64,000 bases of DNA from Macrostomum lignano (taxonomy: Eukaryota), in the NCBI GenBank assembly GCA_002269645.1, contig NIVC01003368.1, positions 1 to 64,000 on the forward strand, given 5' to 3'. The notes under the pieces were generated by a model. That model saw only the letters and a list, made by a program, of their open reading frames with translations, was not told the DNA's origin and searched no databases. This document shows, in pieces, positions 1,492 to 63,184 of this stretch; position 1 is the first letter of the stretch, and each line of letters starts with the position of its first letter. Made by a program: the position numbers and the translations under genes.

Positions 1492-12400
<10,909 letters not shown>

Positions 12401-12836
12401 CTGTGAAAAGGTATGAACAATATGAGTAATTGGGTAATTACTACAAGCCTCAATGGGGCATTTCTTCCTATTTATCAAGTCATCATTTTCACTTCTAGAT
12501 TCATAAAATTTTTTTATAGATTTATAGATTACTTACTGGTGCAGGCTGTTGTGCAAAGTTTTCAGGAACTGTGGCAAGAGTCTTTGTGGTGGAAGACATA
12601 TTGCTGTTTTTTGTTGGACCTTTTTTGTTTGTTACTAAAAAATGCAATTGACAAATTATTAAGAGATAAATTGCTCTTATATAGAGCCTTAGCTGGCTAG
12701 TATTGAGTCAATCTTGTATTTGTAGCATGCAATAAAAACGAGGATTTATAAAATTTGTAGACTTTAGTTGCCCAATAGGAAAAGATAAAGCCTTGAAGTA
12801 TAGACAGGCCATATTTAAAAAAATATTTAAGTATCA

Positions 12837-12927
12837 GATTAAACATGCCTTTTGAGGGAGTTATTTGTATAAATCACGGGGGCCGAGGGATTTATGAAAA
12901 TAACTCCCGAAAAAGGCATGTGTAATC
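12837..12927. other. Long imperfect inverted repeat (hairpin)
   Basis: CATGCCTTTTGAGGGAGTTATTT...ATAAATC / GATTTAT...AAATAACTCCCGAAAAAGGCATG, ~13-nt loop. Confidence 0.7.
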
Positions 12928-14559
12928 TCGTATAAACCATAGACATAAAGACTTTACGGGATATTATTGAATATTACCAAATAAAATCCCGGAGAATGCA
13001 AATATTGTCACGGAGAGTCTTTATTTCTATGGATTATTGTATAATTTAACTCAGAATTATATATTATATTAAAAATAGTAAATAAGTTATATTATTAACA
13101 ACTTAAAGCAAATTTGAAGGTTAAGCCAATATGATAAGGTTTACTATATGATTATTATGTAATAATAGGCATATATTAATGATATTAGTTATAATAAAAT
13201 ACTGTAAGCAAATAAATTTTTATTTGTAATAGCCAAGATGAAATTATCTTGGAAAAATTAAGTAAAATAGCATATTTAAAGTTTTAATAGCATAGCATTA
13301 GAAATAGAATATAGCATAGTCTAATATAATGCTACATATATATATATAATAATAGTAACAATCAGAGAAAAACCTTGCCTTAGTTTAGTAATATATAGAA
13401 TATAGCAATATGCAGAAATAAGCCACTAATACTAACTATGACTATGCCATTTTATGCCACATAAATAGGTTGAAGGTTAATAGGCCTAATGGCCTACTAG
13501 GTAAGCAAAACAAGATCATAGCATGCTTGCACTAGAACAAATCTTATCAAAAAAGTTATTAGGCTCTAGGCCTACACTATAAGCTAAAAATATGCCTTTT
13601 GCAAAAAATACAACCTAGGCCTTAACTTAGGCATACAACCTAGGCATACAACACTAGGCCTCTAAAATCTGTATTTTCCATTTAAAAAATAGGCTTAATG
13701 ATAAAACTTATATTATAATCTGTTTAATAGAAATAGAATGCTAATATATTTTAATTGAAAAATTTTAAATAATATACTAGCAAACAAAAAGTAGGCCTAT
13801 TAGGCCTAATTATGCATTAGACAATACATTATTTATTTTTTTATTTTGCACTTCACAGTATTTTTATATTTTCTATATTGAATTCAATCTTGTTTGACTA
13901 TTCTCAAATTCAAAGCCCATTTTCAAAATTTTGAAAATTTTTCAAAATGACCAATAAAGGCTGTCTCAAAATTTTGAGATTGAGATCAAGATCTCAGTGA
14001 GACTCTAATAGAATATATGAATTGAGAAGTAGAATGTTATAAATGTTTAATGTTTAATGGGTTTAATGTTAAATACTATAAACCCTATGCCTTTGGTAAA
14101 ACTACTAAAAAGCTTCCAAATACAATAATTAAATTAAAAATCAAATACTAATAGAGGCATACTTATAATAGCCTAATTTTTATTACTTATCAACCAATCA
14201 TGGAAATCATTAAAATTGATGACTAGCATTTTAATGTCAAATAAAAATGTACACAGACACAATTAAAGACAAAGTCCAAACCAGAAATTTTGACACTTCT
14301 TTACGACTTTAGTGTATCTTCGGCATTAAAAGAGAAATGCCAGAACACAAGAAATGTACACCGAGACTTAAGTGTAATCATTAAAATTTATATAAAGAAG
14401 TGAATTCATACACAAAATTTATACAAGGTTTATATGCTTGGAAGCTTGGAATTGACAAGTCCATGGGATGGCTAGCTAGTAGATGACGAAATGACTCCCT
14501 GGAGTGTGTATGCCAATTAGGATGACGAAGGGACATAAATTTAAGTTAGGTAATAGACA

Positions 14560-15960: not shown

Positions 15961-16571
15961 TCACTTATGCCCGTAGGACTCGATAATCTTCTGATACTTG
16001 GCCACGCGATCCTTCACCTTCTCGGTCGCTTTGGCGCGCAGCTGACGATCCCGGACCTGACGCTTGTGAAAGTGAGCCGATTTCACTTTACGCCTGCGCT
16101 CCAGGGTGCCAATAACGCCTTGGTATTTCCATCCGACCTCGTGCGACAGGCGGCCGAGCACGCAGAACTTGCGACGGGTCTTCAATCGGAGACACTTGAG
16201 CGCGGACGGCACTACCTGACGCTTGGCCTTGTCGTAGGGGCTCGGAATGCCTTCGAACACTTTCAGACGGTCCAGAGCCTCGGCACCCCTAGCCAGCTTG
16301 TGCGGCAGCATACCGCGCACTGTGCGCCAGAAAATCTTGGACGGCGCACGGAAATGATAGGCCCGCGGCTAGGCTTAGTGTTCAAGCGTTTGCGCAGGAA
16401 CTCGTGGTAGCGAGTTTTGTTGCGAAAGAACGACCCGGAGATGTTGATGCCCTCGCAGCGGACAACCACCACGCGCTGGCCTAGAAGGAGCGTCTTGGCT
16501 ACGACTGCGGCCAGACGGCCTAACAGGTGGCCGCGGGCGTCGATGATCAACGGGCTGGACTTGAATCCCAT
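15961..16571 (-). CDS. RPL13A: 60S ribosomal protein L13a (uL13), CDS intronless, one 1-nt deletion near 16360
   Basis: [18 protein letters not shown]...RCEGINISG...NTKPSRGP[fs][21 protein letters not shown]...[13 protein letters not shown]...[12 protein letters not shown]. Confidence 0.96.
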
Positions 16572-16684
16572 GACTAATTGGCTTGGAGGCCTTGCGACAT
16601 GAAATTGCCGGTTTTTGTGCTAATTTAAAGATCGGTTGGGATATCAGAAAATCTTCTATACTTGACTGACAGCTTCAGGGAGAG

Positions 16685-19168: not shown

Positions 19169-22100
19169 TTAGCCCTTTCCGCCAAGAGAAATTCTGGGAT
19201 CTTTGCTGCGAATGTGCTTCTGCTGATGCGGATGCTGTTGTTGCTGCTGCTGTTGCTGCTGCTGCAGGTCAGTGCTGGCTGCGGCAGCGGCAGTCAGATG
19301 CTGGTACAGCGGGTAGATCTCGCCAGCCGGACAGACCAAGCGGCCGTGAAATTCTGGCCGCCGACCGGAAGTGGCCGAACGTACTCGGTCCTCGTACCAG
19401 TCTTGCACAGACTGATTAGATCGAACTGGCGCAGGTGGTGGCGCAGCAGCGCCGCTAGCAACCCGAGACCGCTTACTGACTGGTTCGGTGGCGCTGAGCT
19501 GCTGCTGCTGAGAGTCAGAGTCCAGCTGCTGCAGCCGGATATTGTCTAGGAAATTCAGACCAGTGGGCTGCGAGCTTAGCGGCTCCGGCGGACGAAACCT
19601 TCGCAGATAAGTGAGCACCTGACGAATCAAGGGGCGTCAGTTGACGTACAATATTGCTGACAGATTAGTGGTTAAAGGTACTTTTAATTACACTCACTAA
19701 TAATCATTTCTAATAACTAACAAGCATTAGTAATCTAGCTTGGTGGATGTGTACACTTTAAGCGACATTGTCACACAACCGGCGAGAGGCATTGCTGCCC
19801 ATTCTGCCGACTCCCCTGAGCAGGCACACAAGCGCGCGGATACGTACGCAGTCATACGCACAGGCACACACTCACACAGGAGTGTGCAACAGCCTTAACT
19901 TTATTTATCGTTAGGCATGTACACTTCACTGCGCCTTGGGGGCTGGTCCTCAAGACCGTTAATTGCACGATCAGAGCCAAGCCGAGACTCTCCAAATTAA
20001 TGTGACTGCACTGGGAATCGAGCCTGGGCCGCTGGCACACCAGAGCGCCGCGTCACAAATAATCATTCTTAATAAGCAATAATCAACCCTAGCACCCGCC
20101 AATAGTTGGCACTACCAGCCTTAAAGCGGATTCACGCGCAGACCTGGGCATGGCCATCGGACACCAGGGCATAGCGGCACAGCATGGAATCCAATTCCAT
20201 AAACAGCAGCCGGTACAGATCCTCCCGCCTCGCCGATCTGAGACTCCGATTGCTAACAGTAATAGGCTCGCCGCGAACTTCCATATCAAGAAACTTCTTC
20301 ACCAGATTCTCGCACGCTTTAATCTCTTCATCGTCAAGAGATTCTTCGCTTAATAGGCTGAGCAGCGACTTGGCTGAACTGCTAGCCGACAGCAGAACGC
20401 TATCGTTGATAGTCAACGGCCAGTACAGAGTGCTCCGTTCCAGGTGTCGGACAGCTCTCACCCTGGGCAGGGTGGGATAGTCCCCAGTCTCTCTAGCCGG
20501 AAACAATCTACTACGCTTCATCACGTCGCGAAAATCGCTAGTCCTATAGTCTGTCAGCTTGATAGGGCAGCCGGCCGTGGGCAGGCAGCGGGACTCGGCA
20601 GCTGGCGGCAGCTCTTCTAGAAGCGGCTTGCCCGGCTCCAGCACGTGCAGGTAAATATCCCAGCATGGCTAGCCAGCATGTGGGTGACGCGACGGGTATT
20701 GCTGCTACTATTAGTAGTAGCGCCGGGCGACTGTTGCTTGGACTCCAGCATGACAAACCGGCTCGGTGGGCCGCGGAGAAAGTTGATCAGGCACACGGAG
20801 TGACGCGCGGTCACGTCGGCCGCGGTGACCCGGCAAACTCTGGCGCAGTTCAACAGGTCCACCTGGAAATAATCCCAGAGTCAGTGACACTTTTATCTGC
20901 CAAATCCTGTGTCAGTGACATTTTGAACTCCCAAATCCTGTGTCAGTGACATTTTGAACTCCCAAATCCTATGTGTCAGTGACATTTTGATCTCCCAAAT
21001 CCTATGTGTCAGTGACATTTTGATCTCCCAATTCCCAGAGTCAGTGACATTTTGATCTCCCAATTCCCAGAGTCAGTGACATTTTAAGCTCCCAAATTCC
21101 AGAGTCGGGAAATGCCATCTTTGAAATCCCATAGTGACAAATCACCAGAAATCCCATAGTGACAAATCCACAGAAATCCCACAGTGACAAATCCACAGAA
21201 ATCTCACAGTGACAAATCCACAGAAATCTCACAGTGACAAATCCACAGAAATCTCACAGTGACAAATCCACAGAAATCCCATAGTGACAAATCACCAGAA
21301 ATCCCATAGTGACAAATCCACAGAAATCCCACAGTGACAAATCCACAGAAATCCCACAGTGACAAATCCACAGAAATCCAACAGTGACAAATCCACAGAA
21401 ATCCCATAGTGACAAATCCACAGAAATCCCATAGTTACAAATCCACAGAAATCCCATAGTGACAAATCCACAGAAATCCCATAGTGACAAATCCACAGAA
21501 ATCTCACAGTGACAAATCCAAAGAAATCCCATAGTGACAAATCCCCAGAAATCCCATAGTGACAAATCCACAGAAATCCCACAGTGACAAATCCACAGAA
21601 ATCCAACAGTGACAAATCCACAGAAATCCCATAGTGACAAATCCACAGAAATCCCACAGTGACAAATCCACAGAAATCCCATAGTGACAAATCCACAGAA
21701 ATCCCACAGTGACAAATCCACAGAAATCCCACAGTGACAAATCCACAGAAATCCCATAGTGACAAATCCACAGAAATCCCACAGTGACAAATCCACAGAA
21801 ATCCAACAGTGACAAATCTACAGAAATCCCATAGTGACAAATCCAAAGAAATCCCATAGTGACAAATCCACAGAAATCCCATAGTGACAAATCCACAGAA
21901 ATCCCATAGTGACAAATCCCCAGAAGTCCCATAGTGACAAATCCCCAGAAGTCCCATAGTGACAAATCCACAGAAATCCCAGAGTGACAATTCCACAGAA
22001 ATCTCACAGTGACAAATCCACAGAAATCCGATAGTTACAAATCCACAGAAATCTCAGAGTGACAAATCCACAGAAATCTCACAGTGACAAATCCAGAGAA

Positions 22101-25100
22101 ATCCCATAGTGACAAATCCCCAGAAGTCCCATAGTGACAAATCCACAGAAATCTCACAGTGACAAATCCACAGAAATCTCACAGTGACAAATCCACAGAA
22201 ATCTCACAGTGACAAATCCACAGAAATCTCAGTGACAAATCCACAGAAATCTCACAGTGACAAATTCACAGAAATCTCACAGTGAAAAATCCACAGAAAT
22301 CCCATAGTTACAAATCCACAGAAATCCCATAGTGACAAATCCACAGAAATCTCACACTGACAAATCCACAGAAATCCGATAGTTACAAATCCACAGAAAT
22401 CTCACAGTGACAAATCCACAGAAATCCCATAGTGACAAATCCACAGAAATCCCATAGTGAAAAATCCAAAGAAATCCCATAGTGACAAATCCACAGAAAT
22501 CCCATAGTGACAAATCCACAGAAATCCCATAGTGACAAATCCCCAGAAGTCCCATAGTGACAAATCCCCAGAAGTCCCATAGTGACAAATCCACAGAAAT
22601 CCCATAGTGACAAATCCACAGAAATCTCACAGTGACAAATCCACAGAAATCCGATAGTTACAAATCCACAGAAATCTCAGAGTGACAAATCCACAGAAAT
22701 CTCACAGTGACAAATCCAGAGAAATCCCATAGTGACAAATCCCCAGAAGTCCCATAGTCATACATGCGCAACAGTCGGCCGAGTCGGCCGATCCGGCCGA
22801 CCGATTTGGCAGCCAATCAAGGAAGTCGCAAAAATGCCCACCAGAAAAATACCAAAGTAGTATTACTAAGTAGCTGACGAGGCATTTTGACCTAATAAGA
22901 CAGTCAAAGTTACTCCTGCCGTTTACCCAAAGTTGCGTTAATTTTGATTTATTACATGTAAGTCGCATTTTTGGCCAAAAACTACGTCGCATTTTTGTTA
23001 AAACTAAGTCGCATGGCCGACCGAATTTTGGAGGTTGCGCATGTATGCCCATAGTGACAAATCCACAGAAATCTCACAGTGACAAATCCACAGAAATCTC
23101 ACAGTGACAAATCCACAGAAATCTCACAGTGACAAATTCACAGAAATCTCACAGTGACAAATCCACAGAAATCTCACAGTGACAAATCCACAGAAATCTC
23201 ACAGTGACAAATTCACAGAAATCTCACAGTGACAAATCCACAGAAATCTCACAGTGACAAATCCACAGAAATCTCACAGTGACAAATCCACAGAAATCCC
23301 ATAGTGACAAATCCACAGAAATCTCACAGTGACAAATTCACAGAAATCTCACAGTGACAAATCCACAGAAATCCCACAGTGACAAATCCCCAGAAATCCC
23401 ATAGTGACAAATCCAAAGAAATCCCATAGTGACAAATCCACAGAAATCCCATAGTGACAAATCCACAGAAATCCCATAGTGACAATCCGCAAACTCCATA
23501 TTCTAGAACAGTGAATCCAACTAACCGACTGATTCTTTGGCGTCAGCCATTTCAGCCCGAAACTCTCCGGAAAGATAAGATGCTCTCCAGCCAGAGCCAT
23601 AGATGAGAAGCTGCCCATAGCAACGTAATCAGCATGCGCTGACGCTTCGTGCAACAATTCTACATCGTAGTTCCGATTAGACTGCTGCTGACCAGCCGCG
23701 GGTGTCTCCTCTTTCATTGGAATGTCCTGTACGCAGGTGGAAGCCAGATTATAATGCTGCCGAGTTAAATTGACAAGGCCGCGAGCCAGAGACTCGCCAG
23801 CCTGACAATTGTGCACTGACAGTCGGAGCAGATCGCCAAATCGGACGCTGTCCCGTTCTGTCACTCGAGGTTCTGTGCCCAACGGCCTGACGCACACTAG
23901 CACCAGGTGACAGTGGTGCACCTGAGTGAATGGTTGCAGTGAAATTATGATTGAGACTTGTTACTAATAGTAGTAGAAAATCCAAATATACAAAATAACA
24001 TACTATTTACCGTACAAGAGCTGAAGGGGCGGTTCTTAGGGACGAATTTAGGGTCGATTCTTAGAGGGGAGTTTAGGGGCGATTCTTAGGGGGGAGTTTA
24101 GGGGCGATTCTTAGGGGGGAGTTTAGGGGCGATTCTTAGGGGGGAGTTTAGGGGCGATTCTTAGGGGGGAGTTTAGGGGCGATTCTTAGGGGGGAGTTTA
24201 GGGTCGATTCTTAGGGGGAGTTTAGGGGCGATTCTTAGGGGAGAGTTTAGGGGCGATTCTTAGGGGGGAGTTTAGGGGCGATTCTTAGGGGGGAGTTTAG
24301 GGGCGATTCTTAGGGGAGTTTAGGGCGATTCTTAGGGACGAATTTAGGGGGCGATTCTTAGGGGGGAGTTTAGGGGCGATTCTTAGGGGGGAGTTTAGGG
24401 GCGATTCTTAGGGGGGAGTTTAGGGGCGATTCTTAGGGGGGAGTTTAGGGGCGATTCTTAGGGGGGAGTTTAGGGGCGATTCTTAGGCGGGAGTTTAGGG
24501 CGATTCTTAGGGACGAATTTAGGGGGCGATTCTTAGGGGGAGTTAAGGGGCGATTATTAGGGGGGAATTTAGGGGCGATTCTTAGGGGGAGTTTAGGGGC
24601 GATTCTTAGGGACGAATTTAGGGGGCGATTCTTAGGGGGAGTTTAGGGGCGATTCTTAGGGGGGAGTTTAGGGGCGATTCTTAGGGGGAGTTTAGGGGCG
24701 ATTCTTAGGGGGAGTTTAGGGGCGATTCTTAGGGGGGGGAGTTTAAAGCGATTCTTAGGGGGAGTTTAAAGCGATTCTTATGGGGGAGTTTAAAGCGATT
24801 CTTAGGGGGGAGTTTAAAGCGATTCTTATGGGGGAGTTTAAAGCGATTCTTAGGGGGGGAGTTTAAAGCGATTCTTAGGGGGATTCTTAGGGGAGAGTTT
24901 AGGGCGATTCTTAGGAGGGAGTTTAGGGGCGATTCTTAGGGACGAGTTTAGGGGCGATTCTTAGGGGCGAGTTTAGGGGCGATTCTTAGGGACGAGTTTA
25001 GGGGCGATTCTTAGGGACGAGTTTAGGGGCGATTCTTAGGGACGAGTTTAGGGGCGATTCTTAGGGACGAGTTTAGGGGCGATTCTTAGGGACGAGTTTA

Positions 25101-33569: not shown

Positions 33570-34249
33570 GTAAGTATAATATGTCAACATTGTAAATAAA
33601 TTAGTGGCTATACTAATGGTTATATAAAAACTGTGAATTTCTACATTGTCTATTAATCTTCAGGTTGGATAGATTCAGAACATTCAGTTTGCTTCTTTGA
33701 GAATTGCCACTTCAAGGATTGCATGTTCAGTTTTAATGAACAACTTCTGATGAACAGTCCATGACTATTGTATTGTTTTTATGCTTAATGTGCACATTTT
33801 CCACTGTTTATTAGCTAAAATGTCTTGACTATCCCTTTTTCAATGTATTCCAGAATGCCATGTAGACTGTTTGCGATTATTCCCTTATGTTAATTAATAA
33901 ATGCATAGTTAACTAATTGTCTATGGTTCAAATGCCTGCTAAAGCTGAAATAATGGCTAGTTGAGTTTGTCATTAAGCCAGGCTATGTCTTAAAGACAAT
34001 TAATTTACTACAAGGGACAATCAAAAAGTTCTGTCACTGCTTAATTTTTTCTGCATGTGGGGCTTCTTTTGAATTGATTTTAGTTCTTACCATAGATATA
34101 TTATATCCCCTACTTAGGCATAAAGTTTTAAAGTTATTTTTGCTTAGCTCAAGAATCTATAACATTTTTTCTTCACTACCCCTGAGCAATTATGCCCTTT
34201 TCAAGCAAAGCCATACATGCTATCATCCATTATGAGTAGAGGTATGGCA

Positions 34250-35270
34250 TAGCAGCAAAGAAAATTGAAGCTTGTTTGTCAAAGCAACATGGAGAGTCTG
34301 CACCATTATATTGCACCATTATCCACTGGATTCATAGTTTTGAAGGAGGCAAAGGTGACTTCAAAGACAAACCTTGGAGTGGCAGACCTAGGACCTCTAC
34401 CAGTCAGAGTGTCATCAACAGTATTGAGAGCCTCCTTGACGAGGACAGGCAAGTGACTATTGCTAAGATAGCTGAGGCCTATGGTATCAGTTATGGCAGC
34501 ACGCAGTCCATCCTAATGGTCTAGCTGGGAATGTCAAAGGTTTGTGCCAGATGGGTGCCAAAACTCCTGACTGCAGAGATGCAGTGCAATTGGATGCAAA
34601 CATGTCAACACCTGCTCCACCTGATGCAGCATCGCCAAGATGAGTTTCTTGACTCTATTATGATGGGGATGAGTCAATGTTTTCTATGTACAAGCTGGAA
34701 ATTAAAGCTCAAAGCATACACTAGAAGTGCCCCAATGAATGAACCCACTCCAATGAAGGCCAAGACAATGCCATTGATGAAAAAGCAGATGGACACTATC
34801 TTCTGGGATTGGCAATGGGTGCTGCTCATTGAGTGGCTGCCTAAGAAGTCGATGGTCATAGGAGACTCTTACATTGCCACATTGCACCAGCTAAAGCCTA
34901 AAGGAAACAATCAAGGAGAAGAGGTATGGCAAGGTCACCAGGGGTATCTAGCTACTCCATGACAATGTGTCAGCACACACCTATCACAAGGCACAGGTTG
35001 CCATTTACAAGCTGGGGTTCAAACAGCTCTCACTCTGCTCATTTGCCAGACCTGGCCCTATTGGACTTCTGGCTGTTTCTGGTACTATAAAACTTGCTGC
35101 AAGGCTGCCATTAGGCTTCTGTGACTATATTGACATCCTTGGTAAACTAGTTGTGCAAATACCATGGTGAAGACTAGTATGATATGGGCATCTAGAAGCT
35201 ACTAGAGTGTTTGGCCAAATGTGTGTCACTATGTGGGAACTTTGTTGAGAAAGTGCAAGATGATTAACAG
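34250..35270 (+). pseudogene. Decayed mariner transposase
   Basis: SGRP, HTH segment, KVCARWVPKLL motif, TIFWD...LIEWLPK, HDN remnant; stops and frameshifts. Confidence 0.88.
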
Positions 35271-46435: not shown

Positions 46436-46764
46436 GGTGACCGGACATTTCGTCAACCGGCATTTCGTCAACCAGACATTATGGCAACTCAGCAAATTGT
46501 AGCTGATTATTATAGCTGCACCAGCAGCCAGAGAATGTGAGAAGTAGTAATGCGATGTCAAAATTTGTTTAACACTTCTTGGAAGTTAATTTTCGTACAA
46601 ACGTTCGGTCCTCAATGGTGTCGCAATACTTGTACCATGGGACCTGAATACCATGCACATGATTTCAATATTTTCTATTATAAAACTTAAAACTTTAACT
46701 TTAATATGTCTGGTTGACAAAATACCAGATGACAAAATGCCGGTTGACGAAATGTCCTGGAACC
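46436..46764. mobile_element. 329-bp non-autonomous TIR element
   Basis: Imperfect TIR GGT(GACC/TCCA)GGACATTTCGTCAACCGGCATT; 8-bp TSD CAGCAGCC. Confidence 0.82.
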
Positions 46765-56919: not shown

Positions 56920-58425
56920 CTACTGCTGTCGATAATTAGTCACAGCATTGCCAGCACGATCGACAGCGCCCAGCATCAACTTGGCAGCTTCATCGTTGGC
57001 AATATCCGGCGCTGACGCAATGACCCAGCTGTCAGCCGAGACCAAACTGCGACAGATTGGGCAGGTGGCATCTGACTGGCGACCGGCGATTGGCAGGTTG
57101 CCAATTGTCTCGCGTCTAGGCGGGCCAACGTCAATCCAGTGCTGGATGCAGCTTTGACAATAGGCGTGAGCGCACTGCAGAAGCACGTCAGCCTGCCTGT
57201 CCATGCAAATGCAGCACTCTTCAATGTCTGCGGCTGGAGAAATGCAACGATATTGATAGCCAGACAGAATTAGAAAGTTCTCCAACTTGCACTTGTCATG
57301 ACGACACATCAAATTGGAATTTTGGCATGATGACTTTGGACCCCGGACGCCAAATTGGCACCCGGTTGTTTCCGAGCAGGAGGAAACTTAAATGAATTTC
57401 TACTATATTTTTGTTTATACATGTCCTCCACAACAAACAAATAAATGTGTTTAACGCCTCGCTTTAGCATTAGGTAATTTCACTTTCTACACTGTAAAAT
57501 AACGAAGAAAGCAATCATGTGTCACAACTCCCAGCAGCTTTTTGACTCTATGAAACGGCCAGACGCGATCCCCACAGTAATTTTAGAACTCGTCCGCCAA
57601 ATTAGTCCAAGGCCGGACATGCAATGAGGACCAACCTCCTAGGTCATGGGTTGGCAAACTAGAAGAGACGAGAGGAGAGGAGAGAGGAAGAGCGCTGAGA
57701 AGAGATAAAAAGTATAAAAATTGAGCGGGCCAAATTGTTATTGTGAAGTTTCAAAGGATCCGAGGGCAGGATAAAGAGGCTAAGCAACCCCTGTCCGAGA
57801 CGCAGTTCCTCACTTGCTGTGATTATGTGCTGTCTGCTGCCTTGATTTGCAGGAGAGGCAAAACCCAAAAGCAACCCTTGCGAATTATGAACTTATTAAC
57901 TTTCCGACATGAGTCGCGAAAGGCGGAATTAAAATTTCCATCTCACCTTTAGCACTTGGTTTCAAAGCTGCGGCGTCAGCAGAAGCAGCAGCAGAAGAAG
58001 CAGCAGACTCAATGGCATCATCTGGTAACAGTCCAAGCACAACAGATGCAGTAAACTGGGATTCAGACTCAGGGCCAGTCCTGACGCCTGCACAGGCTGC
58101 ACTGCCGCCAACAACAGATAACTGACTTAACGATCGCAGGTCTTTACGAAGCGACATCAGTTGACGAAGGCTCAGTAGCCTCATCGACAAGGTTCGACCA
58201 GTAGATGCTTCAACTTTTCGACACTCAATCCGGACGAGCGCCTTCCACAGCAGACTCAGATGATGTGGCGGCATCTGCTGGACAGTGAATTTTAACCGAG
58301 TTGGTTGCGATGCCAATTCGCGCTCACAGAGATTATTCAACTGAGCTACCTGAGCAGCCAGGCGTTCCTGTGTCAGACTGCCCATCTCAAATAGTGTGTT
58401 GAATTCATTTTGCAGTCGATGCATA
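56920..58425 (-). CDS. RNF141: RING finger protein 141-like E3 ligase (two confident exons)
   Basis: Exons 57947-58425 (GSLT...LWKALVRIECRK...LSLRQ) and 56920-57233 (EECCICMDRQADVLLQCAHAYCQSCI...CPICR...SWVI); phase-compatible GT-AG intron. Confidence 0.88.
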
Positions 58426-60207
58426 CTTTTACAAAAAAACTTGCTTTAAGCAGCAGTTGCTGGTGCAAGAATGAAATAGAACAGAAAAGGTGTTTGTAAT
58501 GAATCAAAAGCAAAAGGTACTTCACACTTCAACATATTGGCTTTTTGCTAAAATTAAAAAAAAAGTTTTGTATGTTAAGTCAATAATTAAAAGATAATTA
58601 TATTTTACTTTTTATTTAAAATATGTTCTATTTTATGTTTAAGCATCCAACTAGGCACTTAAATAAATCTATTATATTCTTTTACTTTAAAAATTATTTT
58701 TTTTTATTTCTATTTTTTATTTATTTATTAGCTTTAGCTAATAAATTTAGAATTTAGCTTTTTAAGAGAAGAGTTTAAAAGTAGATTTCATAGAATTGTA
58801 TATTTAAAGGGCTAGACAAAAATGCATATTCTAATATTATAAGTGAAAGTTATTCACTATAATTGCTTAATAAAGGTACTATTATTGCTTTTAAGGTCTT
58901 TCTAAGAAAGCAAACAAAATGTACACTTAAATTTTAATAGCTATTGTTGAATATTTATATCTAGATTAAGCTATGCAAAAGGTGTAAGACCAAGATGGCC
59001 ACACACCAAGATGGCCACAGCTGGGATGGGGGTCACGGAAAATGACAACTAGTTTTCTATTGGATATCTTTGGGTGGAGAGATGTGGGGTTGCAATGGGG
59101 GGGTTTAGAAAGGCAGTCAAAATTTTATTAGTATATTGCAGGGTTAGAGACAAAATGGTTACAAGTCTTAATTTCCTACTTATAGTAGGCCCCTAAGAGT
59201 TGTAAACATATTTAGTATTAAACAAATCTCTTCTTCATATAAAATCAAGTGTGGCTTTTTCAGTGTCTTGTATTGGTCGAGACTAATTTACTTGTTTAAA
59301 GGGATAAAAACTGGGTAAATTTCATGCCCTGTTAAAAATTCAGCTGTTTCATTCACTGACAGCAGTCTAAGCACTTGATACAAAATGGCAGGCGCATATC
59401 CATGTGTGGTCTGTCTGCAGCCAGTTTGCAATGGACAAAAACAAGAAATCAAACTGAAATGTGCTAATTTTAACAGTCCCAGACTTCTATTGTTCCTACA
59501 AAATTTTAAACAGCGGGGCAGGACCTCCTGCAAAGCAGACCCATAGAATTTTTGAACATAATGGAAAGTGTACGTAAATAAGCAAAAAGCGGTATCTAAC
59601 AGGGCAACACAAGCAAACTTTCAATATGCTAATCGGGAGGGGATTAAGCAATCACAGGCTGACTACCATTCTGCCACTCAGCGAGGGTCGAATGGGAGAC
59701 TAACTCCTAATAAATAAACTTTCTTAGACCTATCTATAATGGCATGAGTGCTAGCTAGAAAGGTGCTAACCAGAAGTGACACTGCCATCAAATTGCCAAC
59801 AATTTCTATCTTGGGAGCTAAGGGTACAAGCTGGAGCAAGATGGCACCGTTGCTATCCACACCCTAAAGATCAATGTAGATGTAAGAATAAAGAATGTAC
59901 AGTGGCCAGTGGGCAGTAAGGGTTTCCACATTGCTTGTACTCCCTTCCTCATGAGCCTTATTCCTTTCTTCTTTCTTTGCCCCTGTCACTGCTTGGTTGT
60001 ATAGGTGCTGTCAACCTCAATCGGGTATGTGGACATACAATAGTTCACATTGTTCTCAACCCCATTCCACTACAGTTTTTATCTAATGTGACTAAGCCAG
60101 GTGCTTTTAGTGCAGGGTTTGGCAAACTTTTTACTTTGATTGAGAACCTAGCTCATGACTTCCCTTCTAGATCCACTTTGTTGGCCCCTAAGCGAAGCAC
60201 ACCACTG

Positions 60208-61010
60208 CCCATGTTCAACCCGCTGACAAAACAGCAGTCAATGCAATGGGGCCCCAAGGGACGTCATCCACACATGAAGGCAATGAAATCGGCATGGACA
60301 CAGAACATCATGTGCACTGTGGTTCGATGCAGGAGGTGTGCTGCTTGTTGACTATCTGCCGCAGGGTCAGATGATCAATGCCAACTACATCATGAACTAG
60401 CTTAATCTTCTGCGCACTGCCGTTCTGTCCAAGCATCGCATCATGCATCAGAGGCTTTTTATTCTCTGGGACAATGCGCATCTGCATGCTTCCGCTCGCA
60501 CTTGTGCCAAGGTGGAAGAGCTTGGCTTCCGTCGGCTGAACCACCTGGCTTACAGTCCCGACCTTGCCATTGCTGATTTCCACCTGTTTGGTCTGATGAA
60601 GATGCCAATGCGTGGCAAGGTCTTCACGACTCGGCAGGAAGTCATCAATGCCACCAATGCATCATTGCAACAGTTCGATGCCAAGTTCTGGGAGATAGGC
60701 TTTGAAAAGCTGATCAAACGATACCGGAAGTGCATTGCCTTGGATAGAGAATATGTGGAACGCGCAAGTCCCAAGCCGGTTGATTCCTCAGAAGAGAACA
60801 GCGAGAGTGAGAGCGATTGATGGTGCAGAAGCAATTGATTTTGCTCGAGACACTGATGCTACAGTTGTTTGTTTTGTTTGTTTTGCTGATTCTGTAGTTG
60901 CTGTTCAGTTTGTTCAGTTAGAGGTTTATCCATAAAATAAAAAAATTAGGGATCCTAGTTTATTAATATCCCGTGGCAAACTCCGGAAACTTTTGCTAGT
61001 CACCTCTGCA
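60208..61010 (+). pseudogene. 5'-truncated decayed mariner transposase with 3' end
   Basis: PLTKQQSMQW, WDNA, HLAYSPDLAIADFHLF motifs; CCGGAAACTTTTG...CACCTC mariner-like end. Confidence 0.88.
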
Positions 61011-61482
61011 TGAGGAGGATTTTTTCATCTTTTCATTTTCGTCGCTAGTTTGGTGAGAAATTGTAAATGCTAGTTGAGAAAATAAAACTCATTATGGCTC
61101 TAGCGCCCACTGTGGTTCATGGACATGCTTGAAATTTTAACACAACATTCATCCTGGGCTAATGTTTCAATGAGTCAAATGTCACTCAGCTCCGATAAAA
61201 AGTGCCATGTTAGGAACACCAGTCTGGAAACTTTTGCAGCACCCTGAGTACGAGCATAGGATAAAAGAAAGGCAAAGGAATAAAGGAGAAGAGAGTTGAG
61301 AGGAGAGATTAAATACGAGCGGAGAGAGAGGAGAAGGGAGATTAATGGAAAGGAGAAAGGAGGGAAGGGAGAAGAGAATGAAGAGGAAAAGGGAGATGAG
61401 AGGAAAGAGGTGAGGAGAGATGAGAGGATAGAGGTGAGGAGAGAAAAGAGGAGAGAGGTGAGGAGAGGATAGAAGAGAGGGC

Positions 61483-61760
61483 CCTATTGCAGCGCATGGC
61501 TTAAGTACGCCAGACGCCTACACAACCTGCGCCACGCTGTGAAATGACTTACCTGTGAAAGAAACCCTAAAGCAAAATTAACGCAGTTTTGGGTAAACGG
61601 CAGGAGTAACTATGACTGTCTTATCAAGCTTAAAAGCCTCGGCATCTAATTAGTTCCGCGCCGCGCCGTACTAATCGCTGCGCACCGTATGCGCCGCGCC
61701 GCGCCGTATTAGATCCGCGCCGGACGCCGTCCGCCAAAATGCCCATGCGCTGCAATCAGG
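61483..61760. mobile_element. 278-bp MULE-like MITE carrying a 28S rRNA fragment
   Basis: TIR CCT(G)ATTGCAGCGCATGG; 9-bp TSD AGAGAGGGC; inserted in a GA-rich tract. Confidence 0.85.
61591..61654 (+). pseudogene. 64-nt 28S rRNA-derived fragment (helix 69-71 region)
   Basis: GGGTAAACGGCAGGAGTAACTATGACTGTCTTATCAAGCTTAAAAGCCTCGGCATCTAATTAGT; 52/64 ungapped identity to recalled 28S consensus. Confidence 0.82.
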
Positions 61761-63184
61761 AGAGAGGGCAGAGATGAAAGAGAGAAAAGATAAGGGACGA
61801 GACGAGAGGGCAGAGACAAGAAAGAGAACAGATTAGAGACGAGAGTGCAGAGATGAGAGAAAAGATAAGAGACAAGAGGGCACTCCAATTTTTGCTTACT
61901 TTATCATAACTAATACCTTTACCCTCTACCTTTAACTTTTAACATATACAAACAACACCTCAGTTTTGGTATATTGAGATAGGTTTGAAACTATTATCCA
62001 TGATACAAAAATCACATTTCTTGTGCTAGTAGTGCTACTAGCTTTAGTTGGTAGTAATACCTGCTATAAAGGGAAGTGTTTTTTGTTTTACTAAAATCTG
62101 TCTTTTCTAAGACTTGAAGCTAGGTCATACCCCACCCCAATCACAGCCAATAGGAAATAAGGAAATATATAGACCTATTCCTATCCAAGCAGCCATTTAG
62201 AGCTGTGGCCATCTTAGTATGTGGCCATCTTGGTCATGCACTAGGCCTATGCAAAATGCCCATTGAATGAAGCAAAAACTAAAAGCTGACAGAAATATGA
62301 TATTTAATGTATAACAGTTATAAAAACAAGAATTCTTTCTTATTATATTAAAATAAAATATAATCTAAGACTAGACCTAAGACTAAGAGTTACACTTTTT
62401 CATTGTATTTAAATCTGTTAATTGATATAAAATTTTCCTTGTTTGGCAAATTGTAAGATTTAAATTTGCAGTTATTTTATATAAAGACTACAAAATAAAA
62501 AGCAAAATTCCATCAGGAAAGTCAAATTTAGCCTGCTAAGTAAAGCAAGCGGCGAATAAATACAGTAATGTCAAGTGTGAAAGTGTCAATGTTTATTGTC
62601 AACAATATTTTTTTATCTATCTGCATCTTGATGAAATTTTTGACTTTCACATCTAATTTCAAATTGAGGGTAGGATTTTCAAAATTTGGACATTATATTG
62701 TGTAAAATCTAATATTCATTTAAGTTACAAAAACATAGTCATAACTTTAATACTTCATAAGAAAGTGTACAGTACAGACTAAAACGCACAAATTACACAG
62801 AAACAGGTTTAACGTTAGAAAAAATCTTTTAGACTACTATGACAATGGTAAAATAACGTACTGTAGTATTAATGGAAGGAATACTTTTAATAAATATTGT
62901 TGTCTTGCTGTGTAGCTCGTACGTCTTACTGGCGTACTCGTATGCTCAAGCTTAAGGAAAAATTAACCAAGTGTTCTTATAAAATAACACAGTTAAAAGC
63001 CTAAGCATACAGAAAGTGACAGAATATAGTTTTATTTGTTAACCCTTTCAAAGCGTTCTAAATTTTTTAGAAGATGTCTTGTTGTAGAACTATTTAAAAT
63101 TTTATAGCAGTAATATCAAGCATTAAATAATTTGTTTTTCTAGTTTTTTAGTGAGATCTTGCAGTTTTTCCGGGTTGACTTTAC

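Follow-up and report, generated by a model that had tools for sequence, protein, structure and literature searches.

Two short elements bounded by inverted repeats, found in a 64-kb stretch of the genome of the free-living flatworm Macrostomum lignano, share a core derived from 28S rRNA. We assign a probability of about 0.68 to the reading that both are non-autonomous cut-and-paste MITEs whose common core would go back to one old 28S capture, followed by amplification and then by the formation of a chimeric derivative. That derivative would be the element at 61482/3-61760, here called e1. The element at 22759-23047, here called e2, belongs to a genuine, diversified multi-copy MITE family with 8-bp TSDs. 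Both elements lie where the first-pass annotation had placed them, and the inverted ends and flanking duplications by which it had recognized them as TIR/TSD elements were confirmed in each case.

The window, as we call the whole stretch of 64,000 bp that was analyzed, comprises positions 1-64000 of contig NIVC01003368.1 (assembly GCA_002269645.1); NIVC00000000 is the Mlig_3_7 assembly of M. lignano (PMC5730564). Its GC content is 42%, and minisatellites are dense. About twenty distinct arrays, with units of 20-53 bp and lengths of up to 2.4 kb each, give it an unusually high tandem-repeat density and are interspersed with ordinary genes for a MARK kinase, ribosomal protein L13a (RPL13A), a TLC-domain protein, an ASIC/ENaC-like channel, and a RING-finger protein. 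This crowding is consistent with the published account of a repeat-rich assembly, 15% of which consists of simple and tandem repeats (PMC5730564). The published repeat annotation of M. lignano applied a 200-bp minimum to its repeat models and dropped those that RepeatClassifier left unclassified (PMC5730564), so MITEs such as e1 and e2 are probably absent from it.

The MARK-kinase gene is represented by the following feature.

5284-5721, minus strand: MARK-kinase exon

The RPL13A gene (15964-16619, minus strand) is intact except for one T missing in CCT(T)ATCATTTCC, where the frame shifts between SRGP and YHFRAPSK; this is probably a PacBio homopolymer assembly error, and otherwise a very recent pseudogene. 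Two degraded remnants of mariner/Tc1-type transposases are also present, at 34240-34959 and 59920-60817 (both plus strand), with an HTH-like N-terminal part and a DDE C-terminal part containing WDNAHLH...YSPDLAIADFHLF; the second remnant lies 700 bp upstream of e1. Two more inverted-repeat structures, at 46436-46764 and 12836-12928, may be other MITE families. One of them consists of arms of 35-43 nt that contain CGTCAACCGGCATTTCGTCA-type subrepeats and are separated by 226-259 bp, and the other is a hairpin-like pair of 40 nt with a spacing of 13 nt.

The family search was carried out through protein space, with a query that joined every stop-free piece from the six-frame translations of e1, e2, and a third MITE. 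This chimeric query matched one protein, P0114 (M. lignano BOX15_Mlig018981g1), encoded in locus L002, a 27.8-kb part of contig NIVC01003072.1. The window and L002 together make up the 92 kb of DNA that were compared, and they contain five copies of the core: e1, e2, and copies A, B, and C. Since L002 was reached through one of its own cores, the density of five cores in 92 kb is biased upward, and the copy-number and conservation statistics, which rest on five copies, are provisional and partly post hoc. The 28S reference was the Rfam eukaryotic consensus, which may differ from the 28S of M. lignano itself. The assembly is PacBio-based, with at least one possible indel error nearby, so small indels in the copies may be artifacts.

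Searches in other material were negative. Two diagnostic DNA patterns gave no match in an exact scan of metagenome, prokaryote-genome, and viral collections, which do not hold the flatworm genome, and the core was absent from the contig of P0107, a 90%-identical MARK-kinase fragment from an unrelated eukaryote of 28% GC. The 116-aa ORF of e2 had no homologue in the protein-space search, and a search of 1.84 billion protein representatives returned only an unrelated repetitive protein, P0115. The ORF at 57885-58424 of the window had no database entry. The literature search yielded no description of the core or element sequence, or of M. lignano MITEs.

The members of the e2 family, and a related MITE that lacks the core, are as follows.

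22759-23047, minus strand: e2, a 289-bp MITE with TIR CATACATGCGCAAC and subterminal repeats of the TAAGTCGC type; its core lies on the minus strand
22751-22758: left TSD of e2, CCCATAGT, 8 bp
23048-23055: right TSD of e2, CCCATAGT, 8 bp
L002 17707-18004: copy A, 298 bp, 90.6% identity to e2, TSD CACAGATT
L002 20567-20834: copy B, 268 bp, 73% identity to e2, TSD ATCTAGGC
Ending at L002 12594: copy C, truncated, with the left part missing and the right TIR present
7806-7987, minus strand: related MITE without the core, with the terminal 16 bp CATACATGCGCAACCT as in e2 and with TAAGTCGC motifs

The TIR of e2 is perfect over 14 bp (22759-22772 and 23034-23047), and the element lies in a 25-bp satellite (21123-23485). 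Excision of e2 together with one copy of its TSD restores the 25-bp register of the satellite exactly, evidence on a par with an empty site. The first-pass annotation had the module from two loci; L002 adds three e2-type copies, two complete (A and B) and one truncated (C), and with them a family context. All four e2-family members carry the 28S-like core at the same internal position and in the same orientation. The complete copies (e2, A, and B) have the same CATACATGCGCAAC ends with zero to two mismatches, their 8-bp TSDs are all different, and the insertion sites of e2-type copies comprise a satellite, an intron, and the 3' end of a gene. Family members are about 270-300 bp long (268-298 bp for the complete copies), and CAAAAATGCGAC/TAAGTCGC motifs recur in subterminal position. 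Matches to the TIR pattern are confined to element ends and number six in the window and five in L002, against 0.38 and 0.17, respectively, expected from shuffles. Neither an autonomous partner nor a transposase gene with e2-family ends was found in the 92 kb.

A coding role for the element was rejected, as no frame is open in all copies; the frame that e2 keeps open from end to end does not stay open in A, B, or e1. In P0114, the final 34 residues are translated from the left end of an e2-type element. In BOX15_Mlig018981g1, a protein of 1063 aa with CARD plus Ras/Roc domains, the last 34 codons and the stop come from the left arm of copy A (L002 17707-17800), and this C terminus reflects either exonization or an annotation artifact.

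The MITE without the core is present in four copies, ending at 7987, 8551, 9145, and 9712. This sister MITE has the same ends and lacks the core, so recognition by the CATACATGCGCAAC transposase does not depend on the core. Within 7806-10115, some 13 units of a 30-bp minisatellite (AATGAGCCTACTAAATGACAACAAATGTGT) follow each 180-bp core-less MITE, in a higher-order arrangement that repeats about every 570 bp; this region looks like a MITE-plus-satellite unit that was amplified in tandem.

The structure of e1 is more ambiguous at its left boundary, as reflected in the alternative coordinates below.

61482-61760 (or from 61483), plus strand: e1, a 278/279-bp non-coding TIR element with the 28S-like core in sense orientation
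61474-61481 (8 bp) or 61474-61482 (9 bp): left TSD AGAGAGGG
61482-61499, plus strand: left TIR CCCTATTGCAGCGCATGG, 16/18 matches, ungapped, against the right end
61732-61745, minus strand: subterminal motif, reverse complement TGGGCATTTTGGCG, matching the e2-family TGGGCATTTTTGCG
61743-61760, minus strand: right TIR, reverse complement CCTGATTGCAGCGCATGG, with a 14-nt perfect arm by blastn
61761-61768 (8 bp) or 61761-61769 (9 bp): right TSD AGAGAGGG

The left end of e1 reads CC(C)TATTGCAGCGCATGG and the right end CCATGCGCTGCAATCAGG, and AGAGAGGGC flanks the element on both sides (61474-61482 and 61761-61769). The 9-bp TSD proposed at first pass is possible, and a TIR starting at 61483 matches at 17/18 positions with one indel; an 8-bp TSD, AGAGAGGG, together with an 18-bp TIR containing two mismatches (61482-61760), fits equally well. 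The length hinges on the C at 61482, which leaves 8 bp if it is a TIR base and 9 bp if it is a TSD base. Assigned to the element, it makes the TSD of e1 equal in length to those of the e2 family. This TSD sits in a GA-rich low-complexity repeat and is weaker evidence than the TSD of e2. No second e1-type copy or end was found in the 92 kb, and the mobility and family status of e1 rest on its TIR and a low-complexity TSD.

Outside the core, e1 and the e2 family have a 14-nt subterminal motif (TGGGCATTTTKGCG) in common, with 13/14 matches in local alignment and a shuffle P of about 0.008; the e1 copy lies in the right arm, in inverted orientation. The non-core parts of e1 gave no global alignment to the e2 family, and the TIRs of e1 and e2 share only GCGCATG, which we judged too short to count. 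Given the shared core, the shared motif, and the possible 8-bp TSD, the best reading of e1 is that of a relative of the e2 family, chimeric or rearranged, that has acquired new termini, rather than a member of an unrelated superfamily. The right arm of e1 at 61656-61722 has a GC content of 70% and is built of CCGCGCCGCGCCGTAYTA-type direct repeats.

The core itself was delimited as follows.

61546-61654, plus strand: core of e1 shared with the e2 family, 109 bp; 87-89% identity by blastn to copies A and B over e1 positions 64-172, with nhmmer in agreement
61588-61610 in e1, plus strand: invariant 23-mer TTTGGGTAAACGGCAGGAGTAAC, identical in five of five copies
61591-61654, plus strand: 28S-like 64-mer of e1, helices 69-71, at about 2246-2309 of the Rfam LSU model
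22865-22963, minus strand: core of e2, with the 28S-like 64-mer at 22865-22928 and the invariant 23-mer at 22909-22931

Within the window, e1 and e2 share a module of 87 bp (61568-61654, plus strand, and 22951-22865, minus strand) with 85% identity and an E value of about 1e-20; no further copies were found in the 64 kb. The module noticed at first pass is thus real, and it is longer than had been described, extending over 109 bp by BLASTN and possibly up to 115 bp by alignment. Its 28S piece is exactly the segment that R2, Pokey, and I-PpoI target.

Its derivation from 28S, as originally proposed, is supported both by blastn and by alignment to the Rfam model LSU_rRNA_eukarya. The 64-mer aligns to the 28S consensus without gaps, with 12/64 mismatches in e1 and the same number in e2 (about 81% identity; blastn E of about 1e-13), and the consensus printed by Rfam is the same 28S sequence that the first-pass annotation had quoted. 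In the Rfam search, e1 61546-61661 aligned to model positions 2200-2314 with 19.2 bits and an E value of 0.018, below the gathering score, and copy B scored 27.9 bits (E = 6.5e-5). No match was obtained at gathering thresholds anywhere in the window, where LSU appeared only at E-value thresholds. Homology to 28S upstream of the 64-mer (model positions 2199-2245) is insignificant on its own (P of 0.04-0.2). Just after the core, the e1 sequence TTAGT-TCCGCGC resembles the 28S continuation TTAGT-GACGCGC; judging by this very short match, e1 may have kept slightly more of the 28S than members of the e2 family.

According to the Rfam structure line, the helix-69 hairpin and the hairpin after it both fall within this stretch. 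The substitution G12A creates an A-C mismatch in helix 69 in all copies, and C28G creates a G-G mismatch in e1, e2, and A. Because helix-69 pairs are broken with no compensating changes, the core is not kept as an rRNA-like fold, and we rejected a functional 28S segment or helix-69 RNA fold as its role.

Comparison of the five copies gives some indication of the history of the core. Every 64-mer is exactly 64 nt long, carries G12A, and is altered at positions 34-38. The first-pass annotation had treated G12A and C28G as joint marks of the module; G12A keeps this status (5/5 copies), but C28G, present in e1, e2, and A only (3/5), marks a subfamily, with copy B retaining C and copy C having T. 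The earlier proposal that the cores of e1 and e2 come from one already-diverged ancestor is borne out by the shared G12A and by the shared upstream 45 nt, which are not 28S-like and reach 93% identity to copy B in e1. Mismatches cluster at positions 34-41, as had been noticed, with eight of the 12 in e1 and seven of the 12 in e2 falling there. Copy B is closest to 28S, with nine mismatches; its CTCTT-TT-AAGG-GCT corresponds to CTCTT-AAGG-TA-GCC in 28S. The comparison suggests a single balanced change in the ancestor, in which two T were gained before AAGG and TA was lost after it, with further decay in the other copies. From these patterns, all copies appear to descend from a single 28S capture that had already been modified, and not from separate captures.

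No part of the element is better conserved than the core. Between subfamilies, the 64-mer shows 80-86% identity, against 64-75% for arms and flanks, and the 23-mer is an invariant run in an alignment with 36 variable columns out of 96 (permutation P = 1.4e-4, a post hoc value for five related sequences). The distribution of changes suggests that the 5' part of the core has been kept by the element lineage for some reason. Since the core is best conserved even though the CATACATGCGCAAC transposase does not need it, we take this to mean that it probably has some cis value to the element lineage, for example, by binding a protein, and is more than mere filler.

One candidate for such a protein can be considered in terms of published target requirements. 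Cryo-EM and biochemical work on the silkworm R2 (R2Bm) defined an upstream motif, RUM, at -34 to -22 with the consensus A(-31)WWWGCNNNA(-22), which reads AACGGCGGGA in wild-type 28S, and a cleavage motif, RASIN, T(-6)TNANNT(+1), whose spacing to RUM tolerates at most one extra base (PMC10499050). On the 64-mer, RUM corresponds to positions 3-15 and RASIN to positions 31-37. The RUM equivalent in e1, GTAAACGGCAGGA at 61593-61605, lies inside the invariant 23-mer, which overhangs it on both sides. All five copies contain AACGGCAGGA, in which A-31, G-27, C-26, and A-22 are kept; G12A falls at -25, a position where any base is allowed, so the RUM of the MITEs is as good as wild type under the R2Bm rules, which come from silkworm and a distant R2 clade. 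In RASIN, T(+1) is absent from 5/5 copies and A(-3) is also lost in e1, e2, and A. The spacing between RASIN and RUM, judged by TTAAGG, is displaced by +2 in B and by +3 in C, beyond the R2Bm tolerance. The first-pass annotation had suggested that the nuclease site was specifically lost. The loss holds, with positions 33-41 the most altered in all five copies and T(+1) gone, and it fits the idea that a part able to bind protein was retained; that the loss was specific does not follow, as one inherited +2/-2 rearrangement plus chance, with no selection involved, explains the pattern equally well.

These observations bear on several other accounts of the elements. Similarity to 28S alone would also be expected of a dispersed 28S pseudogene fragment (an rDNA orphon) flanked by chance inverted repeats, with no transposon involved; however, three complete copies with one 14-bp TIR and three different 8-bp TSDs, the exact satellite register once e2 is removed, and the strong enrichment of the TIR over shuffles leave this account with almost no credibility, and for e2 it is effectively refuted. 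The first-pass annotation favored the shuffling of an rRNA cassette between two unrelated DNA transposon superfamilies; by TSD length, these would be Mutator-like for e1 (9 bp) and hAT-like for e2 (8 bp). The terminal sequences of e1 and e2 do differ, and the failure of e1 to align globally to the e2 family outside the core would fit such a history. The difference in TSD length, however, vanishes if the e1 TSD is 8 bp, which fits equally, and the 9-11 bp TSDs of Mutator/MULE elements would agree with e1 only under its 9-bp reading; the subterminal motif is shared by e1 and the e2 family; and only one e1-type copy is present in the 92 kb. The hAT signature consists of termini 5'-YARNG and a TSD pattern nTnnnnAn. 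The 8-bp TSDs of e2, A, and B have a length that fits hAT, P, and others, but the e2-family terminus is CATAC and TSD positions 2/7 are C/G, A/T, and T/G in the three copies; neither e1 nor e2 shows the hAT terminal signature, and no transposase was identified. The claim of two unrelated superfamilies is not upheld, and we regard cassette shuffling as quite improbable. It is unlikely, too, that the core goes back to a third mobile element (a small repeat, SINE-like or otherwise, with a 28S body), a fragment of which inserted separately into e1-type and e2-type MITEs. The stretch shared by e1 and the e2 family starts and stops roughly where the Rfam LSU alignment does, as if it were a unit, and a MITE with a conserved SINE domain provides a precedent (PMC6887750). 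But no copy has a poly(A), an A-rich tail, or an internal TSD around the core, no free copy of the core occurs in the 92 kb, the subterminal motif common to e1 and the e2 family lies outside the core, and the upstream 28S homology that defines the supposed unit is insignificant alone.

A further account concerns why the core was kept, namely, as an R2-type target mimic that cannot be cut and that acts as a decoy, a sponge, a protected docking site, or a means of hitch-hiking. In its favor, the invariant 23-mer covers 28S positions -34 to -22 with the critical RUM bases intact in 5/5 copies, the RASIN consensus is violated in 5/5, and B and C have a spacing shift that R2Bm does not tolerate. 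Yet the loss of RASIN can be a single inherited event, the rules come from the R2-D element of silkworm and may not be those of any M. lignano R2, the 23-mer reaches past RUM at both sides, and only five copies were compared. Selection on single MITE copies for a host-level decoy effect would, moreover, be weak. We therefore give mimicry a slim chance. If it were true, a high-copy MITE would scatter thousands of binding sites for an rDNA-retrotransposon protein across the genome; we know of no described class II/class I interaction of this decoy, sponge, or hitch-hiking kind. An intact recognition motif combined with a broken cleavage motif is a concrete and cheaply testable hypothesis, and transgenesis exists in M. 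lignano.

Two known kinds of rDNA-carrying element were ruled out as the identity of these sequences. An rRNA-derived SINE, SINE28 or other, is incompatible with the TIRs, the fixed 8-bp TSDs, and the lack of an A-rich tail. Pokey/mPok (piggyBac) elements are excluded because the TSDs are 8 bp and not TTAA and the insertions lie outside the 28S TTAA site.

The preferred reading, a single old 28S capture by a MITE lineage, can be set out as a series of steps. A piece of 28S would have entered an ancestral element once, as foreign DNA captured during transposon repair, by transduplication or filler-DNA synthesis. The captured piece would then have gained G12A and the balanced rearrangement at positions 33-41 and been amplified within the element. 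In e1, the 109-bp core of the family, nearest to subfamily B upstream of the 64-mer, and the inverted subterminal motif would have come to lie between different termini, possibly through template switching or recombination; the alternative is that e1 diverged far from an ancestral MITE that it shares with the family. The subterminal motifs probably serve as binding sites for the transposase.

Several known systems resemble parts of this arrangement. Pack-MULEs carry gene fragments captured between transposon ends and are mostly low-copy, unique captures. The acquisition proposed here is likewise a capture of host DNA between the ends of an element, but here one capture would have become the core of a high-copy family. 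MER6/MER6A, a mammalian Tc1/mariner MITE, carries the V-SINE highly conserved domain (PMC6887750); it, too, is a short TIR element with a central, foreign, conserved module that was spread by MITE amplification and is shared across different ends. The M. lignano module differs in being 28S rDNA rather than a SINE, in its 8-bp TSDs rather than TA, in its flatworm host, and in that retroposition is not indicated. The core is best conserved and shared with an element of different ends, and in this it resembles the highly conserved domains of SINEs, the function of which has long been puzzling.

Ribosomal sequences in mobile elements are known mainly from retroelements and from the spacer repeats of Pokey, and a MITE family with a 28S core would add a class II example. 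Among the entries considered here from Table 2 of a 2024 review of rDNA-derived transposable element sequences are SINE28 (28S), the 5S-derived SINE3/AmnSINE1, the Cassandra and Ajax TRIMs, and the IGS repeats of Pokey/mPok (PMC10946416). In these, as in M. lignano, ribosomal DNA was incorporated into and amplified with a mobile element; unlike the M. lignano MITEs, the entries considered are retroelements or piggyBac elements with spacer (IGS) repeats, and none of them is a class II MITE with a core from the 28S coding region. SINE28, which lacks TIRs, derives from another part of 28S. Kojima et al. described in 2016 R2 lineages whose 3' UTR contains 28S-like sequence; there, too, a mobile element holds a diverged version of the 28S segment surrounding the R2 site, but these lineages are autonomous non-LTR retrotransposons residing in rDNA, and the homology has been proposed to help them pair with the target (PMC5035012). 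The carrier in M. lignano, in contrast, is a DNA transposon that is dispersed and does not target rDNA. We conclude that the M. lignano case is a new combination of known ingredients.
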